IMG/VR virus record: IMGVR_UViG_3300036770_003657
Location: 335,797-399,796 of that record
Reading direction: 5' to 3' (one strand)
DNA: 64,000 nucleotides
Under the pieces are notes generated by a model. That model saw only the letters and a program-made list of their open reading frames with translations. It was not told where the DNA came from and made no database searches. The stretch's first letter is position 1. Each line of letters opens with the position of its first letter. Of this stretch, positions 3,891 to 47,989 are shown piece after piece. Position numbers and translations under genes: made by a program.

Positions 3891-4574
3891 TTACCTTAAC
3901 TCTGGAAACAAACACTCCTGTATGAATATACGTACATCTTCCTCATTCAATCCCAAACTGGTCATTACCTTAGGCGTATGTGGGTTCATCTTTTGGTTCT
4001 GTGCGTAAAAATTCTGTTGTTCGCTAGTATTAAGTACAGTGTTATTAGTTTCACCTACTGTGCTTAAGTAATGATCTACACCCTTGCGAGCCATTTCAAA
4101 GATTTGATCTAGTTCGTGTTCGTCCTGTACATTACCTGCTGCCACCATGCTCTTGCTGAATATACGGGTAGCCCAATCTGGTAGTGCTCTTTCCTTACGC
4201 CATTCCATCTTACTTACTTCGTTGGCAAACCATTCACACATAGGATGATTAGCATCCCCTGTAGGACTATAATCATAAAAACAGCCGGTAATTTTATTCT
4301 TACCGGCTATAACATCAAATCCAAAGATTGGGGCAGGGTTGTGTGTATGTGGAAATACGCAACAATGCATCATCCACAATCCCTTTTTCTCTCTAGCATC
4401 TACAACATCTACGTGAGCCCTACGATATGCTTCACTGGTCCAAACACGGTTTACCCATCCTGGTTGATTAAACCTATCCATACCTGGTTCAAATGCTTCA
4501 GTACCAGTGCGTTCAAAACTTTGCTCTAATAGGTGTTGTACATTAATTAGAGCGTCCCAAACTTTACTCTCCAT
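3891..4574 (-). CDS. pcyX: Ferredoxin-dependent bilin reductase, PcyX/PcyA type
   Basis: RRAHVDVVDAR, LWMMHCCVFP, PIFGFDVIAG and NQKMNPHT motifs; directly downstream of and overlapping heme oxygenase. Confidence 0.88.
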   Translation of the reverse strand: MESKVWDALINVQHLLEQSFERTGTEAFEPGMDRFNQPGWVNRVWTSEAYRRAHVDVVDAREKKGLWMMHCCVFPHTHNPAPIFGFDVIAGKNKITGCFYDYSPTGDANHPMCEWFANEVSKMEWRKERALPDWATRIFSKSMVAAGNVQDEHELDQIFEMARKGVDHYLSTVGETNNTVLNTSEQQNFYAQNQKMNPHTPKVMTSLGLNEEDVRIFIQECLFPELR

Positions 4575-5112
4575 TGTACAAATCCCTCATCATCTTAATG
4601 GCCCATTCAAAGGCCACACGAGCCTCATCACCTAACTCATCTGTGAGTTCGGCTCTGATTGCTACTTTAAGTTGATCAGGATTAGTAAACTCATAGAACT
4701 TGCCACTGCTAATGTGTGCTACTTGTTTCTTAATAATTAAGCCACCATTTAGGTCACCCATATGACGACAATACAAATGTGCCTTAAGTAAATGTCTACG
4801 TTCTAGGTCATTGGTTAGCTGGACCAAATAGTCATGATAGGCTAGGGTCTGTGGTAGCCAAACAAACTTGTGCTCTGGCCCAGCTAATTCCATAAAATCT
4901 TGATATATTGCTGGTAAACGCTCAATACCCTGTATGTTAGCAAAGTGTCCTAACATACGATTACCAAATTCAATTGGTCCGTATATGGGCAATAATTGGT
5001 ATAGATAATTTGCGTAATCTTCCTTACTAATTTTACCACTTAGTAATAGTTTAGCAAATTTAGTTGTTTCCGCCTCGTGATGTAAATCCTTAGTAATCTC
5101 TCTTAAACTCAT
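4564..5112 (-). CDS. hemO: Heme oxygenase
   Basis: TKDLHHEAE (proximal His) and HLYCRHMGDLNGG (distal helix). Confidence 0.92.
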   Translation of the reverse strand: MSLREITKDLHHEAETTKFAKLLLSGKISKEDYANYLYQLLPIYGPIEFGNRMLGHFANIQGIERLPAIYQDFMELAGPEHKFVWLPQTLAYHDYLVQLTNDLERRHLLKAHLYCRHMGDLNGGLIIKKQVAHISSGKFYEFTNPDQLKVAIRAELTDELGDEARVAFEWAIKMMRDLYNGE

Positions 5113-5970: not shown

Positions 5971-5975
5971 AGGCA

Positions 5976-7853: not shown

Positions 7854-7858
7854 ATGTA

Positions 7859-7913: not shown

Positions 7914-7915
7914 TT

Positions 7916-8446: not shown

Positions 8447-8474
8447 AATAGTGATTATACAACTAATTTAAGAT

Positions 8475-10603: not shown

Positions 10604-10612
10604 ATCAAATAT

Positions 10613-11074: not shown

Positions 11075-11288
11075 AGCACTTTGGGGCTACTCCCATTCTT
11101 TTAATAGGGATGGCTTCAATGGGATCGTCTGTACATCGCATAATGGTTTGACTGGCTACAGACTTACCATCTACTATAGTAACATCTTTAGTACCATAAC
11201 AAGCCGGTTTAGCCGGCTGGTGAATTTGTCTAGGAACAGAACCACAGCCAGCTAAAATCACTACTAAAGGTATTAGAATTACTTTCAT
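10956..11288 (-). CDS. Lipoprotein
   Basis: Lipobox LAGC; several Cys. Confidence 0.7.
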   Translation of the reverse strand: MKVILIPLVVILAGCGSVPRQIHQPAKPACYGTKDVTIVDGKSVASQTIMRCTDDPIEAIPIKRMGVAPKCFEHPYKQQLPNGRIIEGINYACQKRDGSWEVIDGRGINR

Positions 11289-11294
11289 TATAAA

Positions 11295-12056
11295 TCAACG
11301 AATAGTTGTATTCATTACTACAGCATTTGGATCCTTTAATACTTCGGCTACTCTTGCCTTTACTTTTTCATCTGTAATAGAATTAGTAATCATTCTACTT
11401 CGATCTAAACTTGCAACTGGAGTTACTATAATTCCATTAGAATTTTCCTTTTCATTTTTAGAAACTTCTTTAGGTTTTATCTCAGGTGTTTTTACTGGTT
11501 TTTTGTCTAATTCATTAAAAGCCTCTGTTTCAGCATCAACTTCTTTAACGGGCTCTTTAACTTCGACTTTTTGTTCATCTAATTTAATAGCCATAAGAAC
11601 AAATGCTCTATAAACATTAGTGCTTTCTAGTACGACTTTTGTATCTACAAGCTCTACACCAGTAAGACTTACGTTCTCAACTTTTTTTCTAGTAGCACTT
11701 TGATAACTTCCTACATAAGAGCCGTTTTTGTCTGCCTGGAACATTTTAGTTTGTTTATCAATTTTAGAATCCAATGTTTCTGCAATTTTAGATTGAGCAA
11801 GTGTTCTTGCTTTTTCCACAGCCATAGAATAATCTTGACTACGAGCACTTGCACTAGAATATAAAATACCTGGAGTCTTAGGCAACTTGTGCATCCATTC
11901 TGGAGAACTATCTATGGTTACGTTGGATGGATGTTTGTAGATTACTTTTTCAACTACTCTTTCAGTAACTTGTGGGACAGGAGTCTCTTTTTTAGTAACA
12001 AAAGTTTCACAACCTGCAAGAGCAACTACAATTGGCAAAATAACAAATTTTTTCAT
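11295..12056 (-). CDS. Lipoprotein, LPP20-like
   Basis: Lipobox LAGC; SPEW...SASARSQDYSMAVEKARTLAQSKIA. Confidence 0.6.
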   Translation of the reverse strand: MKKFVILPIVVALAGCETFVTKKETPVPQVTERVVEKVIYKHPSNVTIDSSPEWMHKLPKTPGILYSSASARSQDYSMAVEKARTLAQSKIAETLDSKIDKQTKMFQADKNGSYVGSYQSATRKKVENVSLTGVELVDTKVVLESTNVYRAFVLMAIKLDEQKVEVKEPVKEVDAETEAFNELDKKPVKTPEIKPKEVSKNEKENSNGIIVTPVASLDRSRMITNSITDEKVKARVAEVLKDPNAVVMNTTIR

Positions 12057-12178
12057 TTTGAAGCTTCCTGTAAAGTTGTCCCTGCCTTTTGGCTAATATT
12101 ATCTGTAAGTTTAAGTAAACCTGATATGTCTAATTTACCTACAACGAATCCAATTAGAAATACTGCAATATAACGCAT
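12053..12178 (-). CDS. Small membrane protein (41 aa)
   Basis: Not in the track. MRYIAVFLIGFVVGKLDISG...; ATGA overlap with the next gene; GAGGA RBS. Confidence 0.6.
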   Translation of the reverse strand: MRYIAVFLIGFVVGKLDISGLLKLTDNISQKAGTTLQEASK

Positions 12179-12259
12179 ATGATCCTCTATATCTGTGGGT
12201 TAATGTTTTACTACAAGTCAAATTATACAATCGTTCCTATATCTTGTCATTAATTTTGG

Positions 12260-12589
12260 TTATTTAAAAATGATCAATCCCATAAGTGTTGCTTGAACAA
12301 AGAAACCAAACCCAATTGTAATAATATTGAGTAAGTCCCTAGCAATTACACTACGGAGAAAGAACATAAACAGACCTAGCCAAACCAATCCAACCAAATC
12401 TACAGGTGGCATCTTTTCTGTTAATCCTGTTAATATGGCTATTAGTGTAGGAATAGTGGCCATATGTATTAGAATTACAGCTATCCAGTTCAATGTTTCT
12501 GCACTGATATGTCCAATATTTTCTACTAGATTATTTGCCATTTCCTTAAAATTGAACAATTCAAGTACTTTATCCCATTGTATTTTCAT
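12260..12589 (-). CDS. Membrane protein
   Basis: Three to four hydrophobic segments; GGAG RBS. Confidence 0.7.
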   Translation of the reverse strand: MKIQWDKVLELFNFKEMANNLVENIGHISAETLNWIAVILIHMATIPTLIAILTGLTEKMPPVDLVGLVWLGLFMFFLRSVIARDLLNIITIGFGFFVQATLMGLIIFK

Positions 12590-12597
12590 GTTTACTC

Positions 12598-13137
12598 CTA
12601 TTTGTAAAAAATATGTTGACCTATTACTGCTACTCGTTTACGATTCCACCGTGGATTCACATATTTGGCATGAAAGTACATGGCATCTTCCAAACTGGGT
12701 AATCTAAATCCTTCAAGTAAAACCATTTTGGCTACTTTTTCACTTTCCCTATATGTTTGCTCATGTTTAGGAATACGCTTAGAAGGATGTGTACAATACC
12801 AACTAAATTGGCAAAGCACTTTTTCATATACTACGTTCTTTTGGTAAACTACTTGACACAGGTCTGCTGGAAATTGTCCACTGTTGGCTCTATTCAATGT
12901 TACCTGTGCTACTGCTACCTTACCCTCAAATGGTTCTGTGCCTGCTTCATAATATACATTACGTGCCAAACACTCTAGTTGTCTACTCATTGACTCAGCT
13001 GGTATATGTTTAAAGGAACTCATTTTGATATTGATTTCCTTATTCTCATCCAACTTGAACATAACAACTTTATAACCTACCCACCCTAAACCAATTGCGG
13101 CAATAAGGATGGCTAGCATTTTAACAATGCGTATCAT
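12598..13137 (-). CDS. Cell wall hydrolase, SleB/Hydrolase_2 family, membrane-anchored
   Basis: CLARNVYYEAGTE...AVAQVTLNR...CQVVYQ...QFSW...YFHA...IGQHIFY. Confidence 0.9.
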   Translation of the reverse strand: MIRIVKMLAILIAAIGLGWVGYKVVMFKLDENKEINIKMSSFKHIPAESMSRQLECLARNVYYEAGTEPFEGKVAVAQVTLNRANSGQFPADLCQVVYQKNVVYEKVLCQFSWYCTHPSKRIPKHEQTYRESEKVAKMVLLEGFRLPSLEDAMYFHAKYVNPRWNRKRVAVIGQHIFYK

Positions 13138-13167
13138 TTTTATCTCCTTTACGCTGGATAATTAAGG

Positions 13168-13563
13168 CTATCTACGCATACTAGCAATGTCTTTAGCCTC
13201 ATCATCTGTAAAGATGGGCACAGCATTACTCTTATGCATGGTTCCAATACCCTTAATTTTAGTGCCGGTATAGAGCTTGGGTGCTGCCTTAGTAGCGGCG
13301 GCACTGTCTATACCTTTATTTAGGCTGGGAATACGTGGAGCATCCATTCCACGATATGTCAGTTTTGGTGGCTGATATACAGTACGATCCATGGCGGCAC
13401 GTTGTTTACGTTGCTCCTGTTCAATACCATATTTCTTTTGAAGCGCATGCCAATCCGCTTCAAGTTCCCTTGCCTTCCGTGCTTCATCGGCGTTGCGGAA
13501 TTTAGTTTTACCCTTACGCTTGCCTGTAGTACTGAGCCACGGACCTTCAAGATGCATACTCAT
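13168..13563 (-). CDS. Conserved phage hypothetical protein
   Basis: C-terminal YTGTKIKGIGTMHKSNAVP motif, recalled from T4-like phage hypotheticals. Confidence 0.7.
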   Translation of the reverse strand: MSMHLEGPWLSTTGKRKGKTKFRNADEARKARELEADWHALQKKYGIEQEQRKQRAAMDRTVYQPPKLTYRGMDAPRIPSLNKGIDSAAATKAAPKLYTGTKIKGIGTMHKSNAVPIFTDDEAKDIASMRR

Positions 13564-14108: not shown

Positions 14109-14281
14109 TTTTGGTTATTCACATTTTGATATACATTACCTGCTATATAAGCACTGATGGCGGCCACTGCCACAACTGAATAGACTCCTGGATCTATTTT
14201 TCCAAACCATACCAGTAATTGGTTTCCAAGAATGGCCAACACGGCTACAATAAACTTGCGTTGTCCTATTAATTTATCCAT
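14105..14281 (-). CDS. Small two-TM protein, holin-like (58 aa)
   Basis: Not in the track. [50 protein letters not shown]...; overlaps both neighbours. Confidence 0.55.
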   Translation of the reverse strand: MDKLIGQRKFIVAVLAILGNQLLVWFGKIDPGVYSVVAVAAISAYIAGNVYQNVNNQK

Positions 14282-14607
14282 TAAACATTAAAACTTTCGC
14301 CACAACCACATTTGGCTTTTTCATTTGGATTGTTAAATTCAAAACCTTCGTTTAGGCCTTGTTTAACCCAATCCATTTCTAAACCATCTACATAGACTAG
14401 GCTACGTCCATCTACATATACTTTGACACCATAGTTATCATAGACAAATTGATCTCGTGTTACAGTCGGATTATCTACATATTCTAACACATAGGCTAGT
14501 CCACTACACCCTGTGGTTTTTACTCCAATACGTATACCAATACCTTTACCTCTACGTTCTAAATTATTTTTAACTTTTTCAGCGGCACGTTCAGTCAGTG
14601 TAATCAT
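14281..14607 (-). CDS. iscA: Iron-sulfur cluster assembly protein IscA
   Basis: [12 protein letters not shown]...EGF.F.NPN...CGCGESF; TATAAATA at 14613-14620. Confidence 0.95.
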
Positions 14608-14621
14608 AAAAATATTTATAT

Positions 14622-14642
14622 AAAAAAAGGGCCCTAAGGCCC
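14622..14642 (-). terminator. Rho-independent terminator
   Basis: GGGCC-TTAG-GGCCC followed by a T7 run on the minus strand. Confidence 0.75.
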
Positions 14643-14660
14643 AATTTGTAAAAGGCTAAA

Positions 14661-14789
14661 TTATTTTTTAGCTTCTTTTTTCTCTTCTTTCTTATCTACC
14701 TTCTTGTCATCCTTCTTAGCATCTGCTGCATAAGCGGTACCTACGGTTAAAGCAAAAAGAGCTGTCATCATTGCTGCAACGATTTTCAT
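14661..14789 (-). CDS. Small exported Lys/Asp/Glu-rich protein (42 aa)
   Basis: Not in the track. MKIVAAMMTALFALTVGTAYA then ADAKKDDKKVDKKEEKKEAKK; AGGA RBS. Confidence 0.65.
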   Translation of the reverse strand: MKIVAAMMTALFALTVGTAYAADAKKDDKKVDKKEEKKEAKK

Positions 14790-14854
14790 ACATGTTCCTT
14801 TCTAGTTAGTATGTATATATATTAACGCCTGTGTGTGTAAATGTGCTGACTTAT

Positions 14855-15250
14855 TTATTGAGCAGTTTGCTCAATCATATGTTTTTGTTTGTAGTCTGTT
14901 ATTGCGGCCTTAATGGCATCCTCTGCCAAAATGCTACAGTGAATTTTTACAGGTGGCAGAGCCAATTCTTCGGCTATATGCGTGTTTCTAATTTCCCCTG
15001 CTTGTTCAAGACTGCGTCCTTTGACCCATTCTGTAACAAGACTACTACTGGCTATGGCACTACCACATCCATATGTCTTAAACTTTGCGTCGGTAATAAT
15101 GCCATCTTCCACCTTGATTTGTAATTTCATTACATCACCACAAGCAGGTGCTCCCACCATGCCTGTTCCTATGCCAGATTCGTCTTTGGCAAAACTGCCT
15201 ACATTACGTGGGTTTTCGTAGTGGTCTAATACTTTTGTTGAATATGCCAT
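14855..15250 (-). CDS. iscU: Fe-S cluster scaffold IscU
   Basis: VLDHYENPRNVG, GAPACGDVMKLQ, YGCGSAIASSS, LPPVKIHCS. Confidence 0.97.
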   Translation of the reverse strand: MAYSTKVLDHYENPRNVGSFAKDESGIGTGMVGAPACGDVMKLQIKVEDGIITDAKFKTYGCGSAIASSSLVTEWVKGRSLEQAGEIRNTHIAEELALPPVKIHCSILAEDAIKAAITDYKQKHMIEQTAQ

Positions 15251-18706: not shown

Positions 18707-21700
18707 TATAGTCTCCCTACAACTACTTCAATAACGCCTTCATCACCATCAAAATCTTCTAGTGCTTTACCTATTACCATACCCATACGTGGATCATCAT
18801 GTGCCTTGGCATAGCCATCTCCTGCACTGACCAACATATCACCTTTGCTTATCTTACCACGTACCTTAACTGGTACACGACCTTGTAGAGCAACTGCTAC
18901 AACGTGTTCACCTTCTAGTTCACTGTTCATTAAGTGTGCTGGGTTCTTACTAACTACACCTACTACTTTACGTGTTAAATCTGTACCTATGGTAACTTCA
19001 TTTACTCCACCAATCATTAGAACTGTGCCTTCTTCGTATTTTGCATCAGCAAGATAGTTCTCTGCCAAGTCAGCATATTTTGCTTGTGTAGCTACACCAT
19101 TGAATACAGAAGCATATAATGTATCAGTAGCAGGATTACAGTATATACCACCTGTTCCATAAACACTGTTACCGCTACCCCATAGCATTTGGTATGTAGA
19201 ATTACTATCGTTATTGTAATTGATAGTAACTTGCGAGGAAGTGGAAGCTGAAGCAGCATTACCTGTACAGCTTCCTGAACTTCCACTTACATTACCTGTT
19301 ACATTTCCTGTTAGATTACCAGAAAATGTGGCAGTTATAGTACCTGCACTGAAATTACCACTTGCATCACGTTTGACTAATGTACTTGCTGTATTTGCTG
19401 TAGCACTTGATACATTAAAGGTAGTTCCACTTAATGAAAGATCGGTTCCGGCACTGTAAGTAGTATTAGTATCTGGATTAGCTGGCATAGTCAATGTTAT
19501 TGAACTAGTTCCTGTGATGTGTCCGTTTGCATCATAAGTAACACTAGGTATTTTAAATGTACCACCAAATGCCAGTGTTCTTGTTGCTCCTCCATCACTT
19601 ATTGTACCAGCTGTTACTGAATTACTATGATTAAACGTAGTTCCACTTAGAGATAATCCAGTTCCAGCACTATAGGTAGTATTAGTATCTGGATTAGCTG
19701 GCATAGTCAATGTAATAGTATTGGTACCAGTAATATGTCCATATGCATCATAAGTAACACTAGGTATTTTAAATGTACCACCAAATGCCAGTGTTCTTGT
19801 TGCTCCACCATCACTTACTGTACCAGCTGTTATTGCACTATTGGCATGCCCTAAAGTTATTGTACCTGCTGTACTTTGATTAGCAGTAAACGTACCGGTA
19901 CCAGTTAATCCATTATTACCCTGTACAGTAAGTGTACCATTGCCTATACTGACTGTAGCTGTAGCTACACTAGCAGCAGTAACGTGACCATAACCATCAA
20001 ACTCAAAACTAATATCTTGTATAAATGTATTATCACTGTTATCACTGCTTAAATTACCTACACTGCTAGTGTCAGCATGACTTAGTGTAATAGTACCTGC
20101 TGTACTTTGATTAGCTGTAAATGTACCACTACCAGTTAATCCATTGTTACCCTGTACAGTAAGTGTACCGTTACCTATACTAACTGTGGCAGTAGCTACA
20201 CTAGCACTAGTAACGTGTCCAAATCCATCAAAATCAAAACTAATATCTTGTATAAATGTATTACCACTATTATCACTGCTTAAATTACCTACACTGCTAG
20301 TGTCAGCATGAGAAATATTAACAGTGACACCTTCACCACTTCCTGAAATAGTTAACCCACTAGTTCCAGTTTGACTACCTGGAGTTCCAGAACTTACTGC
20401 TGCTATATAATTACCAGTAGTATCAGTTCCTAGTGCTACACTATCAATTCCAATAGTTGTAGTCATGCTAACATTGTTAGATCCATCAAATGTCACACTA
20501 CCACTAACATCACCAGTTAAGGCAATAGTTCTGGCTGTAGCTAATTTTGTAGCAGTGTCAGCGTTCCCACTCAATCCACCACTTACACTACCTTGGAAAG
20601 TTCCTGCGATAACAGTTGACCCTGCTCCAAATGTCCATTTATCAACACTTTCATCCCATAATAAACTTACGTTGGTATCAGTACCTCTTTCTATTTCTAT
20701 ACCAGCATTTTGTGTTGGTTCAGCAGTTTCGTTACTATTCAGTACAATGATATTATCAGCTAACTCAATAGTTTCAGTATTGATTGTAGTAGTTGTGCCA
20801 CTTACTGTTAGATTACCACCAATAACAGTATTACCTGTAACGTTAAAGTTTCCACCAACATTAAGGTTTTCAGTTACCGCTACTCCACCAGTAACAATTA
20901 AAGTACCAGTTGACGTATTTGTACTGGATATATTACCTGCCATTTCAATACGGCCAGTCCCAAATACCTTAAACTTATCTGCACTGGCTAAATTAGTAGG
21001 TCCACCATAAGTAAAGGCTATGTAGCTGGTAGTATCAGTTACCGTAATAACCTTATCTATAGCCCAATGACTCTTTAGGTTATTATCCTTTACAAACGCA
21101 CTACCATTCCAATTTAAATTAGTTAACCAACTAAATCTATTGGTTGTTCCTACACTAGTAAATCTAGTTTTAAAATCTGTAGTATAAGCACTTTGTAAAG
21201 TAACACTAGTTAATGCCCCACTGCCATTGTAGGTAATATTAAAAGTTGGATCATCTATAGTAGGTGCTGCTTTATAAATCACCTGTCCACCAGTAGTAAA
21301 GTTAATAGTGCTACCATCAGTGGCTTGGAACGTCATGGTGTTACTTGCTGTTAATGTCTTAGCATTAGCCAATGTAAATGTACCTGTGCTGTTGGAAATA
21401 GTCATTCCATTTACAGTCTTATTGGTCAATGCTTCTGTACCTGCCAATGTAGCCAATGTACCTGTCGTTGGGAAGGTTACACTGGTTGCAGCAGTCATAG
21501 TAAATGTGCTGGCATATGCTCCTGATGTAGTTAAGTTACCTCCTAAGGTTATAGTCTTTGTACCATTGTTAACACCAGTGCCACCATATGTTGGGCTAAT
21601 TATGCTGGCTTGCCAAGTACCTGTACTAATAGTGCCTACTCCAGTTAGACTACTATTGACAACACCTGAACCTAATGTTGTACTACTCAATACATCTACA

Positions 21701-24700: not shown

Positions 24701-27700
24701 GTACGTCCACCGTTTTGTGGTAATGCATTATAGTCAGTTCCGCTACCTGCATATTCCCAAGTGTGGCTACTGCTGTTAACAATACTAGGTCTATGCAACC
24801 ATATCTGTTTACTTGGCAGTGTTTCTAAATTGATTAGTTCATTACCACTGGTAGTGGCCAATATCTTAAATGTTGCCGTGTATAAGTTATCTACGTTTTG
24901 GACATCAGTTACATCAATATTTAAAATAGCAGGGCTACCATTGTCATATTGAATAACAGTATCTAAGGTAAAGTTATTTCTAATAAAATTTTCCCCAACT
25001 AATACTTTTTCTACGCTAACAACTAGGCTTCGTGTTGTTGGATCCCAACTGAATATATATGCTCTATTTGGTGTTATACCACTGGTTGTACCTTCGATTA
25101 CTCTACCTGGAATAAATGTATAACTTTGTCCTATAGGAGGAGGTTCTACTTGTAATTTTTGATATACAACGTGACTTTCAGTGAGATCATCAATAAAAAA
25201 TTCTTTAATATTCTTTAATAAAAGATGTTCACCTGTTGGTAGTGGAGCAGTAAATTTTGCCTTTATTTCAAAACCATCGTCCAAATATAATTCAAATTGA
25301 TTGGCATTTAAAATTTTAATTACATAAGTTTGTTCGTCATAAAGACCTTTAATTAAACTATTTCCATTAGCTCTATAAACTATTTTCTCTGTATTTTGAA
25401 AACCGTGAGCAGGAATTGTTATGACATTAGTATTGACATTTATAACTGGTTCGATTTGTGCAGGACTAGTTCCTGGAATGGTGACATTATTACTTGGTGT
25501 AAAAGGTACCTGATCATCCACCTGTTTGTAACTATTAGTTACATCTCCAATATTACTATAGTCAACTATTTCTGGAACATTAATGATACTGTCAATAATA
25601 TCTATAATGATATCAAATAAATCACCAACTCTACTCTGTGCATCAGGATGTACTAGCGCAATAGTTAACGATTTTAGTTCTTGGAAGGCAGCAATATTTT
25701 GAGTTCTTTGATTTATTAGAGCTGCCACAGTGCTTGTAGAATAGGCTACACCAGCTTCAACGCTTTTACTATTGCCTCCTGTTAGTACATCATATGCTAC
25801 TGCCTCTAATACTAGTAAAGTATCTCTTCTACAAGTATCTTGATCATATGTAAATCCTGTATAATATGGCGCTGTGTTGGCAGTTACTTGGCTGTCAATC
25901 CAAGTTATTAGTGCATCTCTTAATTCTTCTTTGTTATTTAAAATTGTACTATATGTTTCTCTATATACAGGATTTCTAAATCTTATTACATAGTGCTGTA
26001 CTGGTAGGTCCCCAAAACCAATAGCAGTAATAGTTTGTTGTGCTCCTGCGCTGCCTGTAGCAACTACAATACCTTTATTAAAATCAAAAGCATTAGGACT
26101 ATAACCATTGGCCCTTAAAGCAAATTGACCAAAGTTAGTAGCACTATTGGTAATACTTAGATATCCACCGCTTTGACAATAACTACCATTTAAACAGAAG
26201 ATCTGGAAACAGCTAACAATCTGTGCATATGCATCATTAATAACACGATATCCTGTACCCCCAAAGCTCAACATAGTAAATGCATTACCTACCATTGATT
26301 TACCTTGTTGCGGAGCAGGTCCTTCTACTGGGTTCTCTGCTTCAATTTGATTAACAGGTATATTTGGTGTACGTACTTTACTACCATCAACCAATACACC
26401 ATTACCACCTAAGAAGCTGATTATACTACAGTTCTGCACATATGGGCTAATACTAATAACTGGTTTATTATTTGGTAGTCTAGTATATCCTACACGACTA
26501 CATTCTGGATCAGCTGGATCATCAAACGCCACTGCATAGTCAAATGTAAAGCTAGGTATATTGTTTACATCCAGTGCATCTCTGAAAGTTATCTCTGTAA
26601 AATAACAGCCATTACGTACACGTAGCATATCCTTACCAGCATTAAGTGGTCTAATATTACAGGCACGTAGACCAGCTCCTACTACACTAACGTTATCTGG
26701 AATAATAATTGGATTATCTTCGTAATAGTCTCCACTAGCAACTGCTATAACAATACGCTTTTCGTTTGGAATGTAGTCAGCAACAAAAGCTACAGTTTCG
26801 GTTTGAATGATTTCCTTGTCTGCTAGTAATGCTGCTCTAGCATCACTCTTAGTTGGACTTATTGGTGTAGCATTAGGATATTCTGTATTTGGTGCTTGAC
26901 TGGGTCCTTGATCTATAATTGTTACTACATATCCTAAAAGTTCCTGAGCTTTATCTATGGCAGCACTGCTGGCTGGATCTCCTACACCAAATGCGTTGAG
27001 ATCATTTTCTAATACTAAATTGATTATTTCTTCTTTCAAATATCTATATGTTATTGCACTGGCTTGTCTATCATTGAATATAGGTAATCCCATTCCATAA
27101 CTAAAATATTTTTTAGCAGCATCTATAGTTTGACTATTGCCACCATACATTAGGTCATAGGCTAAACTGTAGACTAGATATCTTATATCACGAGCGCACT
27201 TTTCTTCATTATAAGTAAAGTTATTAAACTCAACAGTAATAAATTGACTTACTCCAGTAATAATAGCAGCTTTGTTTTCCTGTATCAGTCCAAAATTAAG
27301 TTGCGTTGTTGGATTAGCCGAACTAATGTCTGGAAATACTTTATTGTTTAAAGAACTAGTATTTTCATCTGTAATAACATCAATGATTATATCAACTAAA
27401 TCTTGGCATTTGATAGTTTGTTCAGAATTAGTAGCAGGATATAATGAAGTATCTTGTGTAAGAAGATTGGTACTAGATTTAGTAATTGGTACTGCGTTAA
27501 CAATATCACCAATAATCTCTTGTAGTCTTGTATATGCTGCTAGTGTTTGTGCCTTCTCACCAGCACCTAATTGTAGCACGGCTCCAAATATATAAGCTTC
27601 TGCATTAGAATAGGTTGCACTATTACCGCCATATAATACATCGTATGTTATAGCATCAACTATAAATTCTACATCACGTCTACATTTATCTATTATACTT

Positions 27701-30700
27701 CCTGGGGTGCTGGCATATGATGGATAAGTATCAATTAACCAAGCAATGACTTCCTCTCTAATAAATGCTTTATTTGTTTGTAATTGATTTTTAGCATTTA
27801 AAACTGCAACTTCTGCATTACTGGGATCAGTGAAAGACACTGCATCAATAGCAGGATAACCTTCCTCAAGAAAATCAATTATTTCCTGTACTTTATTTTT
27901 ATAGCTTAAGAAGAATGTGCCACTGGTTACATATTGTTCACTTTCTCTGTATAATTGTTTTAATGCTGCTGCTGTCTGTATCTTTTGATTATAGAAAGTG
28001 CCTAATTGATTCTGTCTATCATAACTATATTGATTTTGTCTAGTATTTAAGTTAGTTCCCAGTACTATGTCATATATAGCTCCTTCAATGACTAGACTCA
28101 TATCTCTTTCACATTTGGTTACTGTGGGGCCAGTATAACTAAATCCTAAAAATGTATTATTGACATAGTTAGTACCTTGATCAACTATATATTCAATATT
28201 ATCTAATAATAAGTCTTTGGCATTGACATAACCTACTGGCAATCCTGCAGGAGTTGGCATAGTAATTGCAGGTAATATTGTAGGTATTTTAGCAATACCA
28301 TCTCCAGTACCAGGTACAGCGGCTACAAAGGTATCTCCTACTGTATAAGATTCACCAGTAGTACCAGCTACAGCGTTCCAATCAGTGCTTCCTAATACTT
28401 CAATTTCATACGTAATACCCGCAACTAAATCTGTTACAGGATATGATACATCAACTACGTTGATTAAGTCACCAGCATATGTATTCGCCAGTATGTTTGT
28501 AATACTTTGAATACTGGCAGCTACTTCAGTTGCCTCAGTTCCACTTTGAGTATCTACAGCCTTTAACAATAGATAGTTTAAAGCTCTAATGGTAATATCT
28601 TTTTGACTAATTAGTACTGCACTGGCTGTGGCATTGCTATAGGTAAATCCTGCCTTTACGCTTTGCCAATTACTGCCATAGATAAGATCATATCCAATAG
28701 CATCAATAATTAAACCAACATCTCTAAAACAAGTTTGATCATTAAATTCATTTCTTTGTTTATAGACTAAATTACTGGCTATTTGTAGGGCACGTTTAAT
28801 AGTTTTTACTGGTTTATTAATGCCATCAAAATTATCATCACCATTAGTTGCACTAACAGCTACTTGTCCACCACCAAATAAATCAGCACTAACAAATTCT
28901 AATTTATTTCCATCTCGATTAAGTGATAATATTGATCCATCTACACCTAAAACTCTTGGAAATGTTAATGTATAACTGTTTACAAACTCTTCCGGTGTTG
29001 TTCCTGCTGGGGCACGTAATCCTACATAGTTATTGCCGTTTGAAGTTAACTCTTTTAATCTAATCTCGCCTTGATTATTAACATTAAGACCGTCAGTGTT
29101 GATTAAGGTAGATCTTATTGTAGATGGAGTTGTCTCACCTATCCTAGTATTATCAATAGTTCCACTGTTGATATCTACGTTGGCTAATGTGCTAGTGCCA
29201 TCTACAGTAAGATCTTCAGCAATATACACATTGTTGTTTACTGTAATATTATTTACTGTAATATCATCTAATAACAAACTGCCTAAAGTTGCTTGGCCAG
29301 TAACATCGAGGTCACCACCAATATTAACATTACCAGTAGTATCAAGTGTATTGGCATCAATGTTATCAGCATTTATATCATTACTTGTTATTGTGCCTGT
29401 GAAATTACTAGTACCAGTAACATCTAGATTGCCACCTACATGTAAGTTTTCGCTTATTCCTACACCACCTGTTACTACGACGGTTCCAGTAGTTGTATCG
29501 GTAGAACCTATATTAGCCTTTGCATATACCTGTCCATCTAAATTAGTCTCTAAATTAACTGTTAAGTTTTCAATAGTAGCATTATCAAGTACATCTAATA
29601 TATCAGTTTCTATATTAGTGGCATCAACGTCACCAGTCAAATCACCTGTAACATCACCTGTAACATTACCAGTATACATAGCATCGGTACCTGTAGTACC
29701 TCTATCCAATATTACAGTTTCAGTGACTACACCACCAGTGTCCTTATAAAGAATAATATCTGTGTATGCTTTTGCATCAAACCCATTAGTACCATTTTCA
29801 AAAACTTTTACACTTACATTTTCAGCAAATATATCACCAGTGCTTGGTCCAATAATAGTACCTTCAAACTCACCAATAAATCTTTCAGTGGCTTCGATTA
29901 TTGTTCCTGTTATGGCTCTAGGTTCTTCTGCTCCAATTACAGTGGCATCAATATTCCCACCATTTATATCAACTTGATCTAACCTACTAAGCCCATAACT
30001 GGTTATATTACCACTTACCTTACCGATAAACTCAGCTTCTACATAACCTGAATCTAAGGGTGCTCCACCTGTACCATTCTCCAATACTTTTGTAATACCA
30101 TCTTCAGCATAGATATCACCAGCAAAATTTCCGCTTATGCTACCTTCAACATTACCATAGAATACAGGTGGTTGATAACTTAATACATTTGTTGGGCCAC
30201 CTGTTCCATTATCTAATATTTTAGTAGTGCCATCAGCAGCATATAAATCACCAACTACATTACCTTCTAGTTTACCAACAAATTTTACACTGGCAGTAAT
30301 TACAGTTCCTGTGATTAAGGTAGGACCGCTATTACCAATTATAGTGCTGTTAATAAATCCACCGTTTAATAACAAACTACTTATTTGACTGGTTCCAGTA
30401 GTTTGAGTTATTCGACCTAACAATTCACCTGTAAAAGTTGCATCTGTTCCATTGGTGCCATTCTCTAAAACTTTTACTCCACTATCGCTATAAATATCAC
30501 CAAAAACATCACCAAACAAGTTACCAGTAATATTGCCTTGAATGTTAGCTAGAATTTCTTCTTCTACATTTATACTATTGGCTACTATATCGCCAGCTAC
30601 ATTAAGATCGCCTCCAATACCTACTCCACCAGATACAATCAATGTTCCTGTATATGGGTCTAAACTAGGCGTATTATCAGAAAGTATTGTTTTAACATTA

Positions 30701-31035
30701 ACAGTAATTATTTCTGGATCAGCTACTAGGGTTTCTACAGTATTGTTTGTCATGACAATACTATTGATTCTATCTTCAGGGCCAATGCTTAGAAAAGTAT
30801 AGGGATTGAATTCGGAAACAACTTCACCTAAAGTAACAATATAGGATAAGTTGTTCCACCTAGTAAAACCATCACCTATTTTAAAGTTTTTTTGATCTAG
30901 GTCAACCCCAATCTCGCCCTGTGCAAGAATCGGGTTAATATCTATCCAGTTTTGTCTTGAATCTCTTCTTAATTGAATCCTTTTGGCCATTATTGTCTCC
31001 AACTGTAGTTTGGAGATAGCCTCCAAACCGCCCAT
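18706..31035 (-). CDS. Giant tail fibre / receptor-binding protein (4,109 aa; alternative start at 30990)
   Basis: Mtd_N-like RIQLRRD...W...NPILAQGEIG...KIGDG; G/T/N-rich beta repeats; pectin-lyase-like beta-helix; C-terminal ADLAENY...VALQGRVP fibre tail; TAAATA at 31041-31046. Confidence 0.9.
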   Translation of the reverse strand: MGGLEAISKLQLETIMAKRIQLRRDSRQNWIDINPILAQGEIGVDLDQKNFKIGDGFTRWNNLSYIVTLGEVVSEFNPYTFLSIGPEDRINSIVMTNNTVETLVADPEIITVNVKTILSDNTPSLDPYTGTLIVSGGVGIGGDLNVAGDIVANSINVEEEILANIQGNITGNLFGDVFGDIYSDSGVKVLENGTNGTDATFTGELLGRITQTTGTSQISSLLLNGGFINSTIIGNSGPTLITGTVITASVKFVGKLEGNVVGDLYAADGTTKILDNGTGGPTNVLSYQPPVFYGNVEGSISGNFAGDIYAEDGITKVLENGTGGAPLDSGYVEAEFIGKVSGNITSYGLSRLDQVDINGGNIDATVIGAEEPRAITGTIIEATERFIGEFEGTIIGPSTGDIFAENVSVKVFENGTNGFDAKAYTDIILYKDTGGVVTETVILDRGTTGTDAMYTGNVTGDVTGDLTGDVDATNIETDILDVLDNATIENLTVNLETNLDGQVYAKANIGSTDTTTGTVVVTGGVGISENLHVGGNLDVTGTSNFTGTITSNDINADNIDANTLDTTGNVNIGGDLDVTGQATLGSLLLDDITVNNITVNNNVYIAEDLTVDGTSTLANVDINSGTIDNTRIGETTPSTIRSTLINTDGLNVNNQGEIRLKELTSNGNNYVGLRAPAGTTPEEFVNSYTLTFPRVLGVDGSILSLNRDGNKLEFVSADLFGGGQVAVSATNGDDNFDGINKPVKTIKRALQIASNLVYKQRNEFNDQTCFRDVGLIIDAIGYDLIYGSNWQSVKAGFTYSNATASAVLISQKDITIRALNYLLLKAVDTQSGTEATEVAASIQSITNILANTYAGDLINVVDVSYPVTDLVAGITYEIEVLGSTDWNAVAGTTGESYTVGDTFVAAVPGTGDGIAKIPTILPAITMPTPAGLPVGYVNAKDLLLDNIEYIVDQGTNYVNNTFLGFSYTGPTVTKCERDMSLVIEGAIYDIVLGTNLNTRQNQYSYDRQNQLGTFYNQKIQTAAALKQLYRESEQYVTSGTFFLSYKNKVQEIIDFLEEGYPAIDAVSFTDPSNAEVAVLNAKNQLQTNKAFIREEVIAWLIDTYPSYASTPGSIIDKCRRDVEFIVDAITYDVLYGGNSATYSNAEAYIFGAVLQLGAGEKAQTLAAYTRLQEIIGDIVNAVPITKSSTNLLTQDTSLYPATNSEQTIKCQDLVDIIIDVITDENTSSLNNKVFPDISSANPTTQLNFGLIQENKAAIITGVSQFITVEFNNFTYNEEKCARDIRYLVYSLAYDLMYGGNSQTIDAAKKYFSYGMGLPIFNDRQASAITYRYLKEEIINLVLENDLNAFGVGDPASSAAIDKAQELLGYVVTIIDQGPSQAPNTEYPNATPISPTKSDARAALLADKEIIQTETVAFVADYIPNEKRIVIAVASGDYYEDNPIIIPDNVSVVGAGLRACNIRPLNAGKDMLRVRNGCYFTEITFRDALDVNNIPSFTFDYAVAFDDPADPECSRVGYTRLPNNKPVISISPYVQNCSIISFLGGNGVLVDGSKVRTPNIPVNQIEAENPVEGPAPQQGKSMVGNAFTMLSFGGTGYRVINDAYAQIVSCFQIFCLNGSYCQSGGYLSITNSATNFGQFALRANGYSPNAFDFNKGIVVATGSAGAQQTITAIGFGDLPVQHYVIRFRNPVYRETYSTILNNKEELRDALITWIDSQVTANTAPYYTGFTYDQDTCRRDTLLVLEAVAYDVLTGGNSKSVEAGVAYSTSTVAALINQRTQNIAAFQELKSLTIALVHPDAQSRVGDLFDIIIDIIDSIINVPEIVDYSNIGDVTNSYKQVDDQVPFTPSNNVTIPGTSPAQIEPVINVNTNVITIPAHGFQNTEKIVYRANGNSLIKGLYDEQTYVIKILNANQFELYLDDGFEIKAKFTAPLPTGEHLLLKNIKEFFIDDLTESHVVYQKLQVEPPPIGQSYTFIPGRVIEGTTSGITPNRAYIFSWDPTTRSLVVSVEKVLVGENFIRNNFTLDTVIQYDNGSPAILNIDVTDVQNVDNLYTATFKILATTSGNELINLETLPSKQIWLHRPSIVNSSSHTWEYAGSGTDYNALPQNGGRTRVEYEQVSELPGRVYSSGTNELGDFKVGDFIKAENKTGNVQFTNTVSIAALDALKLAVGNITIEEFSADIDLGDNEVGGPSHNRLSTQLAVRSFLENRLGDFIDKELTTTTQPGGIPQLNALGKLSADQIPPLRNFLVYRSNGYRSRLNLVNTVPPTSILNGDLAIETYSGVSLTLDGVLVAVDGDLILQASSGATGRVVGGNNSTTVVIGSLGEFFDDTFDTVGEITLNGASTGLTPTLVGGIIPDQNTNYILSELDSKQILLLDPTQTYDFTGVTSVTGSNSQAQGTIEYIVEGVANALDNSNDPVTGLAGGSGYTQPPSGFYTDVPLTGGSGTGARADLFLSGGVVTNVVLTAGGSGYTTVDRLSANDANLNGRTGGSAFSVKVSQIQNRVYVDIVGALKFNANSIAPEFTEDANVVTKTTDQLDSTVVATFNAASTGSGGNVNTALSRITIVGHPFDDGDAVQYNAGFGTPLGGIVNNSIYYVKSIDADTIELYTTYSLSTKLTIVNSGAGNQTLTLSILDITKDTVYIPDHGFATGDAVKIIAADPPYGILTNSIFFVGSVTTNTFTIHEGRADAVASTLGLTIGAFNFTNTGTGVASFRKQSIKIIGVVDNASILAENWSSLSASNIDTTNIVSGIMSTTRLAIGTANSNTFLRGDSTWAKAVQKIKKPSVDSAITITGPFFDPGPGGIQEFYNEVTVGVDVVSGGQENANIPGHTNLGVASFNKSQFEVGTGGSQGAVGIKSGVVDAGTLDGQDGLYYLTPSNIIGQVPVDKGGTNIASYTVGDMLYASGSTIIQKLPIGDTNSVLNVQPVSLGSANKRPVWTDSITLNGLTVNGNVNITGAASTLNAYDIQMDDNNIELGSVEPISSRSGNINFTAIGALTTTITASTAGMIPGMTLSRVSGGQLGANPRVTAINGANLFTFTADTPPDQISPNGVAVVFNTGGITDATAAGGGITIKGTTDKLFRWIQSTSSWTSSENMDLATGKTYKINGVDVLSSTTLGSGVVNSSLTGVGTISTGTWQASIISPTYGGTGVNNGTKTITLGGNLTTSGAYASTFTMTAATSVTFPTTGTLATLAGTEALTNKTVNGMTISNSTGTFTLANAKTLTASNTMTFQATDGSTINFTTGGQVIYKAAPTIDDPTFNITYNGSGALTSVTLQSAYTTDFKTRFTSVGTTNRFSWLTNLNWNGSAFVKDNNLKSHWAIDKVITVTDTTSYIAFTYGGPTNLASADKFKVFGTGRIEMAGNISSTNTSTGTLIVTGGVAVTENLNVGGNFNVTGNTVIGGNLTVSGTTTTINTETIELADNIIVLNSNETAEPTQNAGIEIERGTDTNVSLLWDESVDKWTFGAGSTVIAGTFQGSVSGGLSGNADTATKLATARTIALTGDVSGSVTFDGSNNVSMTTTIGIDSVALGTDTTGNYIAAVSSGTPGSQTGTSGLTISGSGEGVTVNISHADTSSVGNLSSDNSGNTFIQDISFDFDGFGHVTSASVATATVSIGNGTLTVQGNNGLTGSGTFTANQSTAGTITLSHADTSSVGNLSSDNSDNTFIQDISFEFDGYGHVTAASVATATVSIGNGTLTVQGNNGLTGTGTFTANQSTAGTITLGHANSAITAGTVSDGGATRTLAFGGTFKIPSVTYDAYGHITGTNTITLTMPANPDTNTTYSAGTGLSLSGTTFNHSNSVTAGTISDGGATRTLAFGGTFKIPSVTYDANGHITGTSSITLTMPANPDTNTTYSAGTDLSLSGTTFNVSSATANTASTLVKRDASGNFSAGTITATFSGNLTGNVTGNVSGSSGSCTGNAASASTSSQVTINYNNDSNSTYQMLWGSGNSVYGTGGIYCNPATDTLYASVFNGVATQAKYADLAENYLADAKYEEGTVLMIGGVNEVTIGTDLTRKVVGVVSKNPAHLMNSELEGEHVVAVALQGRVPVKVRGKISKGDMLVSAGDGYAKAHDDPRMGMVIGKALEDFDGDEGVIEVVVGRL
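19420..20313 (-). repeat. Two in-frame tandem duplications in the fibre gene (2x231 nt and 2x216 nt)
   Basis: cactgctagt at 20061 and 20292 (231 apart); atctggattagctggcatagtcaatgt at 19471 and 19687 (216 apart). Confidence 0.9.
25580..28780 (-). repeat. Five phycobiliprotein-like helical repeats within the fibre
   Basis: Cys codons of the C-x-R-D motifs at 28729, 28111, 27682, 27196 and 25831; each followed by I/L..A/S..YD...G[GST]N. Confidence 0.75.
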
Positions 31036-39509: not shown

Positions 39510-40390
39510 AGTCCAGCTAATTTTTTAAGGTTGATAACATCCTGGCTTTGATTAGTATTGGCCTTTGGCTGTATGTTAGATACTCTGCGGGCTAGTGCGA
39601 CTATATCATTGGTCTCGCCGACAAATTTTTTGTCCTGTGTAATCTGTTGCATGGCCTTACGCATCATGGCCTTCTCTCTATTCTTATCGTTATAGCCTGT
39701 AGGCACATAATCTTCACGAGGTAAGCCCTGTTGGAATTTAGCAAAGGCTCTTGGATCAACTCCCATACGTTGAGCACTGGCATCTGTGCCCATTAAATGT
39801 GCTATATCATCTGGATCAGCTGCTTGTCCAACCATTTTAGTAATTCCCTTTTGACCGTTATTAAAAGGAGTATCTGTAGATATAGATGCGTTTTTGTTTA
39901 CTCTATAAGTACCACCGGTGTGTACAGGTTGTCCTTGAGCATTTTTAGTCATTGACATATCTATAGGCCCGGCTTGATATCTATCCGTAGTGTTACCTGC
40001 CTTATCAGTCCTTCTACTCAATCCTGCTATTGGTGTAGTTGCTTGGGGCTCATCAAATATTTCCTCTGTTGCTGCTTGATCCTGTGGTTTAGGATTAGGA
40101 GTTAATGGGCTTCCTGGCTGACTGGGAGCATCCGTTCCACCAGCCATGTTTACTTCACTGCCTGGCTGTAATTGCGGCATTGGTGATGGTGCATTTGGAT
40201 CAGCTGTAGGGTTTACCATTACGCCTTGTGGCCCTTGCTGTATAGTGTTAGGATTTTTACTAGGATCAAATGTAGTCTGTGTTTGGGGATTATTAGGATC
40301 CTGTAGTGTTACCTTATTAGGCGTAGCCTGTATTACCTTCATCTTAGTCATTTGCTGAGGTTGTTGCCCAGTTACTTCAAATATTTTCAT
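39506..40390 (-). CDS. Pro/Gln-rich putative internal head protein
   Basis: MKIFEV N-terminus; C-terminal DVINLKKLAGL. Confidence 0.55.
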   Translation of the reverse strand: MKIFEVTGQQPQQMTKMKVIQATPNKVTLQDPNNPQTQTTFDPSKNPNTIQQGPQGVMVNPTADPNAPSPMPQLQPGSEVNMAGGTDAPSQPGSPLTPNPKPQDQAATEEIFDEPQATTPIAGLSRRTDKAGNTTDRYQAGPIDMSMTKNAQGQPVHTGGTYRVNKNASISTDTPFNNGQKGITKMVGQAADPDDIAHLMGTDASAQRMGVDPRAFAKFQQGLPREDYVPTGYNDKNREKAMMRKAMQQITQDKKFVGETNDIVALARRVSNIQPKANTNQSQDVINLKKLAGL

Positions 40391-41087
40391 CGTTCATCTC
40401 CAGGCTTAAACCGCCAGCCTCTAATTTACTTATATGATTTCGTAGCTTTTCAATAAGACCTTTGGCACGTAATACCTTAAATGCTACATTCTCTACACCT
40501 AACTCACCTGTTTGGCTCAGTCCATGTTGACGCATCTTTCTAATATCATCATAGACATTTTGTACAGCATTGATATCTTTACTCTTTAGGGCCAGTTTAA
40601 TTTTACCCTTAAAATGTTTGTACTTTTCACCGACCAGTTGTCTATCTAAATTATCATGCACTGCTTGTGGAGTCTTAAGCCAACGATCATCTAGTATGCT
40701 ATATATTCCTGCACTAGTATGAGGCTGTTCGCTGTCCTGTACATATACTTCTACATCAATACCTTTGACTTGAATATCATAGGTAAAATTGTACAAGTTC
40801 TTCTTAGCATCAAATAGCTGCTTATATACTTCCTTGCGCTCGGGGTCGATGTCAACGATTAGGTGTAGGTCAATATCACTAGCACGACTATAAGTATACC
40901 CTGCATTACTGCCGCTTATGGTTATATCTTGTAAGTTAAGAGGTTTAATATCTATAAAGTTAATAAAGTTACGAGCTATTTTTAGTAATAGATATCTTAC
41001 TTCTGGCTTGAGTTTACCTTTACGCCATAGTTTACTGTTAAGTCTATTATGAAATATGACTGCTGTACTGACCAGGTCTTCGTGCAT
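40377..41087 (-). CDS. Nucleotidyltransferase (Pol beta superfamily)
   Basis: ITISGSNAGYTYSRASDIDLHL (GS...DxD) and DVEVYVQD. Confidence 0.75.
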   Translation of the reverse strand: MHEDLVSTAVIFHNRLNSKLWRKGKLKPEVRYLLLKIARNFINFIDIKPLNLQDITISGSNAGYTYSRASDIDLHLIVDIDPERKEVYKQLFDAKKNLYNFTYDIQVKGIDVEVYVQDSEQPHTSAGIYSILDDRWLKTPQAVHDNLDRQLVGEKYKHFKGKIKLALKSKDINAVQNVYDDIRKMRQHGLSQTGELGVENVAFKVLRAKGLIEKLRNHISKLEAGGLSLEMNDENI

Positions 41088-44113: not shown

Positions 44114-44135
44114 GGGGCCCTTGTGCCCCTTTTTT
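44114..44135 (+). terminator. Rho-independent terminator
   Basis: GGGGC-CCTTGT-GCCCC-TTTTTT. Confidence 0.8.
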
Positions 44136-46792: not shown

Positions 46793-47989
46793 ATGATAGA
46801 TAAAATCCACTTCAAACGCTTAATCGGCGACTTAAAAGATTCGGGCAAATATCGTGTGTTCAACAATATAGTCCGTGAAAAAGGTAAATTTCCAAACTCA
46901 ATATGGTACGGTCCATACGCAATCAAGAACATCGTTAACTGGTGCTCTAACGATTACCTCGGAATGGGTCAGCACAAAGTTGTCATAGACGCAATGCACA
47001 CTGCACTAGATCAAACTGGTTCAGGGTCAGGTGGTACTAGAAACATCGGCGGGACCAGTACTTATCACGTTGCTTTGGAAACAGAACTAGCATTCTTACA
47101 TCGTAAGGATCGTGCTTTATTATTCAGCAGTGCTTATGTGGCTAATGAATGGAGTCTTATAGCACTGAGTAAAATTGTACCTAATATACACTTTGTGAGC
47201 GATAGTAAAAATCACAATAGTCTAATAGTAGGTATCAGTCATAGTAAGGCTCCGAAAACCGTGTTCACACACAACGATATGGAAAACCTTGAAAGCATAC
47301 TTAAAGCAGTTAGAGATGCTGGAGAGACTCCTTGCGTAGTGTTTGAAAGCGTATACAGTATGGATGGCGATGTTAGCACGATGACTGAAATATGTGACCT
47401 TGCTGACAAATACGAAGCCATTACCTATATTGATGAAGTACACGCAGTAGGCCTATATGGTGAACGTGGTGCAGGTAAGTTGGAAGAACTTAAACTACAA
47501 CATCGTGTGGACATTGTAAATGGTACATTAGGTAAAGCATATGGTGTACAAGGCGGATATATAGCGGCAGATAGTGAAGTGGTAGATGCTATACGCAGTG
47601 TAAGTCATGGCTTTATCTTTACTACAAGTATGAGCCCTGTTAGTTGTGCTGGTGCATTATCAGCAGTTAAATTTCTTAAAGAACATAATGAAATAAGAGA
47701 AAAGCATCAGGAGCGTGCCAATAGACTAAAAACATTATTGAAACAAAATGATCTTCCACTTATGAATACTAGTACACATATTGTGCCAGTGCTTGTAGGC
47801 AATGCTGTTCGTGCTAAGGCAATGAGCGATGCCCTACTAGAAGATCATAACATATATGTTCAACCTATAAATTATCCTACAGTGGCAGTAGGCACAGAGA
47901 GACTACGTTTTGCTCCAACTCCATATCATGATGATGGTATGATGGAGAAGTTAATTGTGGGATTGAAGGATATTTTTAGTCGGATTTAA
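46793..47989 (+). CDS. hemA: 5-aminolevulinate synthase (C4/Shemin pathway)
   Basis: [56 protein letters not shown] (PLP Lys), [15 protein letters not shown]. Confidence 0.93.

Follow-up and report, generated by a model that had tools for sequence, protein, structure and literature searches.

A 64,000-nucleotide stretch of IMGVR_UViG_3300036770_003657 – a freshwater phage genome of 399,796 bp, of which this stretch (hereafter the window) makes up ~16% – contains a gene for a giant fibre-like protein of 4,109 amino acids (aa) with five repeats, each carrying the motif C-x-R-D. Sequence comparisons and structure predictions strongly support the view that these repeats are real, distant relatives of the phycobiliproteins, with no other family competing, and we regard them as a new branch of the bilin-binding globins, carried by phages and built as tandem repeats. 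From the conservation of the C-x-R-D site we lean towards bilin binding as its best explanation, and virions that carry pigment are plausible. A full-text literature search found no description of phycobiliprotein-like domains in phage fibres, or of pigmented virions.

Bilin-synthesis genes of phages (ho1, pebS, pcyA, pcyX, and now alaS) are long known, yet to our knowledge there is no consensus on what they are for, least of all in phages whose hosts are not photosynthetic. For these, the 2024 paper on the Shemin pathway in phages ‘can only speculate’ and points to no acceptor within the phage (PMC11480375); bilin biosynthesis-associated globins (BBAGs), which are phycobiliprotein paralogues, are mentioned there as a possible partner of the phage-made bilin (PMC11480375). 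A conserved chromophore site along phage fibres makes both the purpose of the bilin and the light-dependent adsorption of some cyanophages testable in the cultured phages S-PM2 and P-HM2.

The initial annotation of the window reported five C-x-R-D repeats, at Cys769, Cys975, Cys1118, Cys1280 and Cys1735, in a protein otherwise poor in Cys, and the translated open reading frame (ORF) contains its five 22-residue segments, at residues 768, 974, 1117, 1279 and 1734, and its upstream segment (LQTNKAFIREEVIAWLIDTYP), at residue 1085. The segments belong to true repeats of ~160 aa each (pairwise blastp E 1e-4 to 1e-12), which were detected by pairwise BLAST of the segments and with a hidden Markov model (HMM), plain self-BLAST of the repeat region having returned the diagonal only. 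The HMM built from the five repeats finds exactly five full copies (aa 705-853, 897-1060, 1053-1202, 1202-1360 and 1658-1814). Repeats 2, 3 and 4 are contiguous, with repeat 1 located ~45 aa before repeat 2 and repeat 5 ~300 aa after repeat 4 (Table 1). The range first assigned to them, 25580-28780, stops short of the N-terminal half of repeat 1, which extends to ~28965. The whole protein contains just 15 Cys among its 4,109 residues (0.37%), five of them inside C-x-R-D; the amino-acid composition of the protein predicts 0.022 motifs of this kind, and the probability of finding five or more is ~4e-11. Seven of the 15 (Cys1459, 1477, 1512, 1536, 1609, 1614 and 1620) lie in the spacer between repeats 4 and 5, which also holds one weak half-copy of the repeat (aa 1373-1420, repeat HMM).

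The likeness to phycobiliproteins was said to extend beyond the motif. The whole fibre protein matches the phycobiliprotein family PF00502 with 41.7 bits against a curated cut-off of 22.2, and repeat 5 alone scores 30.7-31.6 bits over profile positions 72-153 of 155; repeat 3 alone falls below the cut-off (19.5 bits), and repeats 1, 2 and 4 give no match. When repeat 5 was compared by phmmer with all PDB sequences, 12 of 12 matches were phycobiliproteins, and the motif Cys falls on the chromophore Cys. A five-repeat profile matches 93 PDB sequences; every one of the 60 listed is a phycobiliprotein, with C-phycocyanin alpha in first place (E 1.2e-4), in an alignment that runs from helix B through K-C-A-R-D-I-G-Y-Y...G-G and places the motif on K-C84-A-R-D. 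A 39-sequence profile performs less well against the PDB (best E 5e-3, with two or three unrelated proteins among the weak matches). Alignment by hhalign of 400 fibre-domain copies with 207 cyanobacterial phycobiliproteins gives a probability of 85.5% (E 6e-6, 101 columns) with C, R and D in register, compared with at most 0.6% for reversed and column-shuffled controls. Precomputed PF00502 annotations are present on 27 of the 120 closest full-length homologues, so that databases ‘see’ the domain, apparently with no discussion of it in print.

The model of repeat 5 computed by AlphaFold2 from 39 aligned sequences, without templates, has seven helices, a predicted local distance difference test score (pLDDT) of 83 and a predicted template-modelling score (pTM) of 0.77. 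Its top 50 Foldseek matches in the PDB are all phycobiliproteins or derivatives of them, including allophycocyanin B (template-modelling score, TM, 0.67), phycoerythrin, smURFP and the bilin domain of ApcE. The same is true of the top 50 PDB matches of a tandem model of repeats 3 and 4 (pTM 0.75, pLDDT 71.5), in which a long helix runs between the domains and the Foldseek alignments lengthen to 155-191 columns. The predicted fold is thus phycobiliprotein-like in both models, as expected in the initial annotation. That the resemblance arose by chance, or by convergence of helical repeats, seems to us highly improbable: the E-values of single copies are modest (best 1e-4 against the PDB and 3e-3 with Foldseek) and most single copies have no PF00502 match, but five independent methods point to one family and to no other, the shuffled and reversed controls fail, and the motif is in register.

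A profile search of 1.84 billion representative proteins returned 1,397 clusters at E <= 1e-3, the best 150 of which are all large multi-repeat proteins (830-6,382 aa, with 5-35 matched stretches each). The domain is present in 120 of the 120 closest full-length homologues, which together hold 1,423 copies (1-36 per protein); P0005, from locus L001, has 31 copies, spread across residues 234-4660. A DNA-pattern search for domain loci – a sample and not a census – yielded at least 120 loci, and 120 of 120 are true domain carriers. A search for small homologues found no stand-alone version of the domain, giving only two fragments, both on contigs of <1 kb. A second giant homologue (P0016, 6,682 aa, of the 34-36-copy class) is encoded outside the window, on a contig equal in length to that of the window and most likely identical with it; if so, the phage has roughly 40 such domains in two proteins.

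The repeat region matches 339 of 50,697 GenBank phage records, including those of S-PM2, S-RSM4, Syn1 and P-HM2, and the names of the matched records begin with Synechococcus (258), Cyanophage (51), Prochlorococcus (16), Marine (13) or uncultured (1). Likewise, the P-HM2 copies match 320 phage records, all of them cyanophages, and all cultured phages among the matches are cyanophages. S-PM2p091 (3,338 aa; T4-GC 830) has five C-x-R-D copies and PHM2_096 (3,677 aa; T4-GC 513) has three copies, at aa 1388-1793 (8569-9786 of locus L229). These giant proteins of T4-like cyanophages are true homologues of the window protein, are encoded between baseplate and neck genes, and have no annotation beyond tail fibre, structural or hypothetical protein; their BFVD models match the repeat-5 model.

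The motif is highly conserved across the 1,423 copies (Cys 94%, Arg 91%, Asp 96%), and 92% of the copies having all three positions (1,283/1,400) retain it in full. In orthologues at 71% identity all five Cys, Arg and Asp are kept and the x residue and flanks vary, so that the Cys is retained in homologous fibres, as the initial annotation had anticipated. More than half of the Cys residues in the homologue proteins (56%) are motif Cys. Other near-invariant residues are Asp +14 (98%), Tyr +30 (96%), Asn +20 (86%), Tyr -5 (83%) and Asp +9 (82%), and the profile of the 1,423 copies contains no conserved His or Met that could act as a heme ligand. Among copies with the Cys, Asp is present in 100%, Arg in 96% and Tyr +30 in 99.9%; among the 58 copies without it, these fall to 47%, 24% and 55%, respectively. 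Cys, Arg, Asp and Tyr +30 are therefore kept or lost together, as would be expected of a ligand site. Asp +14 is kept in 55 of the 58 Cys-less copies and looks structural. The commonest substitute for the Cys is Phe (~2%).

These patterns bear on two alternatives to a bound bilin. One is that the domain is an apo structural module – a phycobiliprotein-derived bundle used as a rigid shaft spacer, with C, R and D holding the bundle or the contacts between repeats. Its occurrence in 1-36 tandem copies, which take up most of the length of proteins such as P0005, is spacer-like; the pTM of the two-domain model suggests a fixed, rod-like arrangement; Asp +14 outlasts the Cys; and neither a correlation with phage bilin genes among cultured phages nor a lyase among the 40 window ORFs scanned was found. 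However, a packing residue would drift to Ala, Ser or Val, whereas here Cys is held at 94-96% in proteins with 0.5% Cys and is replaced mainly by Phe; loss of the Cys is coupled to loss of Arg, Asp and the distal Tyr, as in a ligand site; and a free Cys on a virion in oxic water is unusual unless occupied. It is the main rival to bilin binding, in our judgement a doubtful one.

A second alternative, that the site serves a metal, another small ligand, a receptor contact or a Cys cross-link between subunits, appears distinctly unlikely. It would account for the invariant Asp +9, Asp +14, Asn +20 and Tyr +30, which have no phycobiliprotein counterpart, and for the C-x-D-D reading of the P-HM2 copies. 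But C-x-R-D aligns with the position at which a homologous fold binds bilin, and retention of the ancestral function is the simplest reading of this; the lack of a conserved His or Met speaks against heme. The single conserved Cys per domain makes an intradomain disulfide impossible, and no known cross-linking or metal-binding family was matched.

Bilin binding has a known chemistry at such a site. In the phycobiliprotein fold, the Cys of the triad forms the thioether to the bilin A-ring, the Arg contacts the propionate and the Asp the pyrrole NH (PMC10151467), and the C-X-R-D globins BBAG-1 and BBAG-3 attach bilins without lyases (PMC10151467). We favour bilin binding because this chemistry coincides with 92% retention of the triad across deep divergence and with its decay as a unit, and because free Cys is otherwise avoided in these extracellular proteins and lyase-free attachment is documented for BBAGs. 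The predominance of Synechococcus, Prochlorococcus and ‘Cyanophage’ records among the domain matches – phages whose hosts are full of bilins – was counted in the same direction, as were the adjacent HemO and reductase genes of the window, the contigs that carry both these genes and the domain, and the ALA-synthase-like gene beside the L001 fibre gene. In this reading the five repeats, phycobiliprotein-type globin domains set one after another along a giant fibre, would be made late in infection in a cell that contains free bilin. The window phage would synthesize the bilin itself, by its heme oxygenase and reductase, and its ALA-synthase-like enzyme could increase the tetrapyrrole supply; in cyanophage infections the host would provide the bilin. 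The domains would lie in the shaft of the virion fibre. Each domain would bind one bilin covalently, either unaided (as in the BBAG globins and ApcE) or through a lyase, and the released virion would carry a string of chromophores on its fibres.

Several observations weigh against bilin binding. The relationship to phycobiliproteins is remote (15-20% identity), the pocket check is limited to C, R, D and a few other residues, and only four of 39 single copies reach E 0.01 against PF00502. The N-terminal X-Y hairpin, by which phycobiliproteins form alpha/beta heterodimers, is not modelled in the single-domain model, in which residues 1-26 are disordered; in the tandem model, a neighbouring helix may take its place. 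The three P-HM2 copies read C-Y-D-D, C-V-D-D and C-I-D-D, keeping Cys and Asp and replacing Arg with Asp. No bilin lyase of the CpcS, CpcT or CpcE/F type was found among the 40 window ORFs scanned, a scan that covered small ORFs in part, and the restriction to cyanophages may come from the shared ancestry of one phage lineage rather than from function. The distribution of bilin genes points the same way: by tblastn, 23 phage records match the window reductase, compared with ~320-340 cyanophage records with the domain, and most domain-bearing cyanophages have no match to it. Pelagibacter phage Mosig has hemO and pcyX but not the domain (six-frame HMM scan of the whole genome), and one related lineage (L214) has no giant fibre at the syntenic site. 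The C-x-D-D variant of P-HM2 is worth comparing with the C-x-R-D copies.

The absence of the domain from Mosig, of the fibre from L214, and the disparity in record counts indicate that the fibre is not a general acceptor for hemO/pcyX products, and the initial proposal that it is the ‘missing acceptor’ in hemO/pcyX phages of non-cyanobacterial hosts is not supported. Mosig, which infects SAR11, is the closest cultured carrier of the window reductase (48% identity), with hemO adjacent (39650-40886 of locus L003). It is classified in the cyanophage family Kyanoviridae and also has a putative ferrochelatase beside its neck genes; for bilin-acceptor hypotheses it is a useful negative control. The domain and the HemO/reductase pair do occur together on three independent contigs: that of the window, 3300022752_004384, and 3300023174_005575, the last of which encodes a 2,938-aa protein with one copy (motif KCHRD). 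In addition, a gene 75% identical to the window ALA-synthase-like gene adjoins the 31-repeat fibre gene in L001. The window reductase has 335 relatives in IMG/VR, and no domain was found within +/-10 kb in the 79 of their loci that were fetched; the fibre domains and HemO/reductase are 14-27 kb apart in the window, so this is the expected outcome and not evidence of absence. It is defensible to say that in all carriers examined to date bilin is at hand, supplied by the host or by the phage itself.

As to what a pigment on the fibre would do, light sensing for adsorption is our first, speculative guess. Phages P-HM2, P-HM1 and S-PM2 need light to adsorb to their hosts, an effect that is independent of photosynthesis and unexplained, and all three carry the domain. 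We think it unlikely, on present evidence, that the fibre is a virion-borne biliprotein light sensor in which light changes the state of the fibre and adsorption takes place by day. If true, it would explain the light-dependent adsorption of these cyanomyoviruses, and would provide a virion-level reason for phage ho1, pebS/pcyA/pcyX, cpeT and alaS.

The fibre domains share with phycobiliproteins (PF00502) a predicted globin-type helical fold (TM 0.6-0.7), a Pfam score that exceeds the cut-off, a K-C-x-R-D motif that aligns with Cys84, Arg86 and Asp87, and the Tyr, Gly and Gly-Gly positions on helix E. They differ in their extra invariant Asp, Asn and Tyr and in lacking alpha/beta pairing or a phycobilisome context: phycobiliproteins are free subunits of 160-180 aa assembled in (alpha-beta)3 discs, whereas the fibre domains are phage-encoded and form 1-36 tandem copies in virion proteins of 1,000-7,000 aa, and for relatives of the window phage the predicted hosts are not cyanobacteria. 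Also comparable are the BBAGs of heterotrophic bacteria and some cyanobacteria, which are phycobiliprotein paralogues outside light harvesting, some with C-X-R-D, and are associated in genomes with heme oxygenase and ferredoxin-dependent bilin reductase, their function being unknown (Rockwell, Martin & Lagarias 2023, PMC10151467). BBAGs, however, are small, stand-alone cellular proteins clustered with those enzymes, unlike the fibre domains. If bilin is bound, the fibre would be the first biliprotein in a virus particle as well as a new branch of the bilin-binding globin family, and its domains could be compact, possibly self-attaching fluorescent or photoactive modules; if not, the fold of a photosynthetic antenna has been reused as a phage fibre building block.

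Outside its repeats, the 4,109-aa protein looks like a phage fibre: it has an Mtd_N domain near its N-terminus and strongly resembles tail-fibre families of PHROG (phrog_5342, E 2e-197; phrog_4527; phrog_19602). Its N-terminal 690 aa have no match among PDB sequences, and its C-terminal 1,210 aa match only in a short stretch resembling the phage L decoration protein Dec. A 96-aa ORF upstream of the fibre gene was considered as the PAAR protein seen upstream in a related locus (L002) and rejected, as BLAST found no similarity. In L214 (Ga0136644_10000363, 4498-10387), whose reductase is 80% identical to that of the window, the RNR genes are immediate neighbours of the Hc1/NifU block, no giant gene intervening, and the 12-kb fibre gene of the window sits exactly at this junction; judged by the empty site in L214, the fibre gene looks like an insertion or a movable cassette.

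Table 1. Features of the window, with coordinates in window numbering; Cys codon positions are given with each repeat.
Feature	Coordinates	Strand	Basis
Giant fibre gene, 4,109 aa	18706..31035	-	ORF; PHROG tail-fibre families; homologues annotated fibre/virion structural in cultured cyanophages
Mtd_N domain, fibre N-terminus, aa 20-57	30865..30978	-	PF18454, E 1e-10, 41.8 bits (cut-off 26.3)
Repeat 1, aa 691-853, Cys769 (28729-31), motif TCFRD	28477..28965	-	Repeat HMM and alignment; alone no Pfam match
Repeat 2, aa 897-1059, Cys975 (28111-13), motif KCERD	27859..28347	-	Repeat HMM and alignment; alone no Pfam match
Repeat 3, aa 1040-1202, Cys1118 (27682-84), motif KCRRD	27430..27918	-	PF00502, 19.5 bits, E 1e-3, profile 30-99; two-domain model
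Repeat 4, aa 1202-1364, Cys1280 (27196-98), motif KCARD	26944..27432	-	Repeat HMM and alignment; two-domain model; alone no Pfam match
Spacer between repeats 4 and 5, aa 1364-1657	26065-26946		Seven Cys; weak half-copy of repeat
Repeat 5, aa 1657-1819, Cys1735 (25831-33), motif TCRRD	25579..26067	-	PF00502; PDB phmmer; AlphaFold model and Foldseek
Dec-like stretch, fibre aa 3483-3529	~20449-20589	-	C-terminal region of phage L Dec, PDB 6e3c_C, E 1e-7
Homologues of genes annotated NifU_N and Fe-S_biosyn (IscA-like)	14281-15250	-	Such genes in L002 and L211
Conserved block, Hydrolase_2 to reductase	3891-13563	-	Order shared with relatives L007-L085
Heme oxygenase (HemO)	4564..5112	-	PF01126, E 5.5e-21; adjoins reductase in 79/79 related IMG/VR loci
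Ferredoxin-dependent bilin reductase (PcyX/PcyA-like)	3891..4574	-	PF05996, E 1.2e-15; 48% identical to Pelagibacter phage Mosig reductase
513-aa ORF directly downstream of reductase	2339-3880	-	No Pfam/PHROG match; tblastn match in 7/79 related loci
‘HemD-like’ ORF	1280-1846	+	Weak: 20.9 bits (cut-off 27.5), over 38 residues
209-aa protein	44134-45461	-	PHROG 3704 ‘ferredoxin’, E 7e-90; no Pfam match
5-aminolevulinate-synthase-type aminotransferase	46793..47989	+	PF00155, E 3.9e-63
Ferritin-like gene	47976-48416	-	

Four tetrapyrrole genes had been assigned to the window, and Pfam confirms three of them: the heme oxygenase, the bilin reductase and the 5-aminolevulinate (ALA)-synthase-type enzyme. 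The fourth, a HemD-like protein, has sub-threshold similarity only. The HemO and reductase genes overlap by 11 bases and lie on the same strand as the fibre gene, 14 kb from its 3′ end. The reductase is of the PcyX/PcyA-like type, and its product may be phycoerythrobilin or phycocyanobilin.

In ~70 of the 79 related loci the two genes belong to a conserved block, Hydrolase_2 ... Rv2179c-like exoribonuclease - DnaK - HSP20 - ClpS - HemO - reductase, so that in this phage clade the bilin genes are in tight linkage with genes for chaperones and protease adaptors; the Hydrolase_2 is of the cell-wall type. This block and the set of bilin genes match those of the large freshwater phages of Chen et al., which have ho1, a pcyX-like gene and ALAS and are phylogenetic relatives of cyanophages (bioRxiv 10.1101/2020.02.13.942896). 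The hosts of those phages are predicted to be methanotrophs, from pmoC similarity only (bioRxiv 10.1101/2020.02.13.942896), and a reductase from this group makes phycocyanobilin, the acceptor of which is unknown (PMC11480375).

Other genes of the window suggest an iron and iron-sulfur (Fe-S) theme around those for tetrapyrroles. The NifU_N and IscA-like homologues are located between the fibre and HemO genes, and the ferritin-like gene directly follows the ALA-synthase-like gene. Genes for an Hc1 histone-like protein and ribosomal protein S21 are present in relatives. In L211 and L214, a gene for a 519-560-aa protein with no Pfam match occupies the same position downstream of the reductase as the 513-aa ORF of the window. 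The 209-aa PHROG 3704 protein, encoded next to a fatty-acid-desaturase-like gene, could be the ferredoxin for the bilin reductase if its annotation, which looks doubtful, is right.

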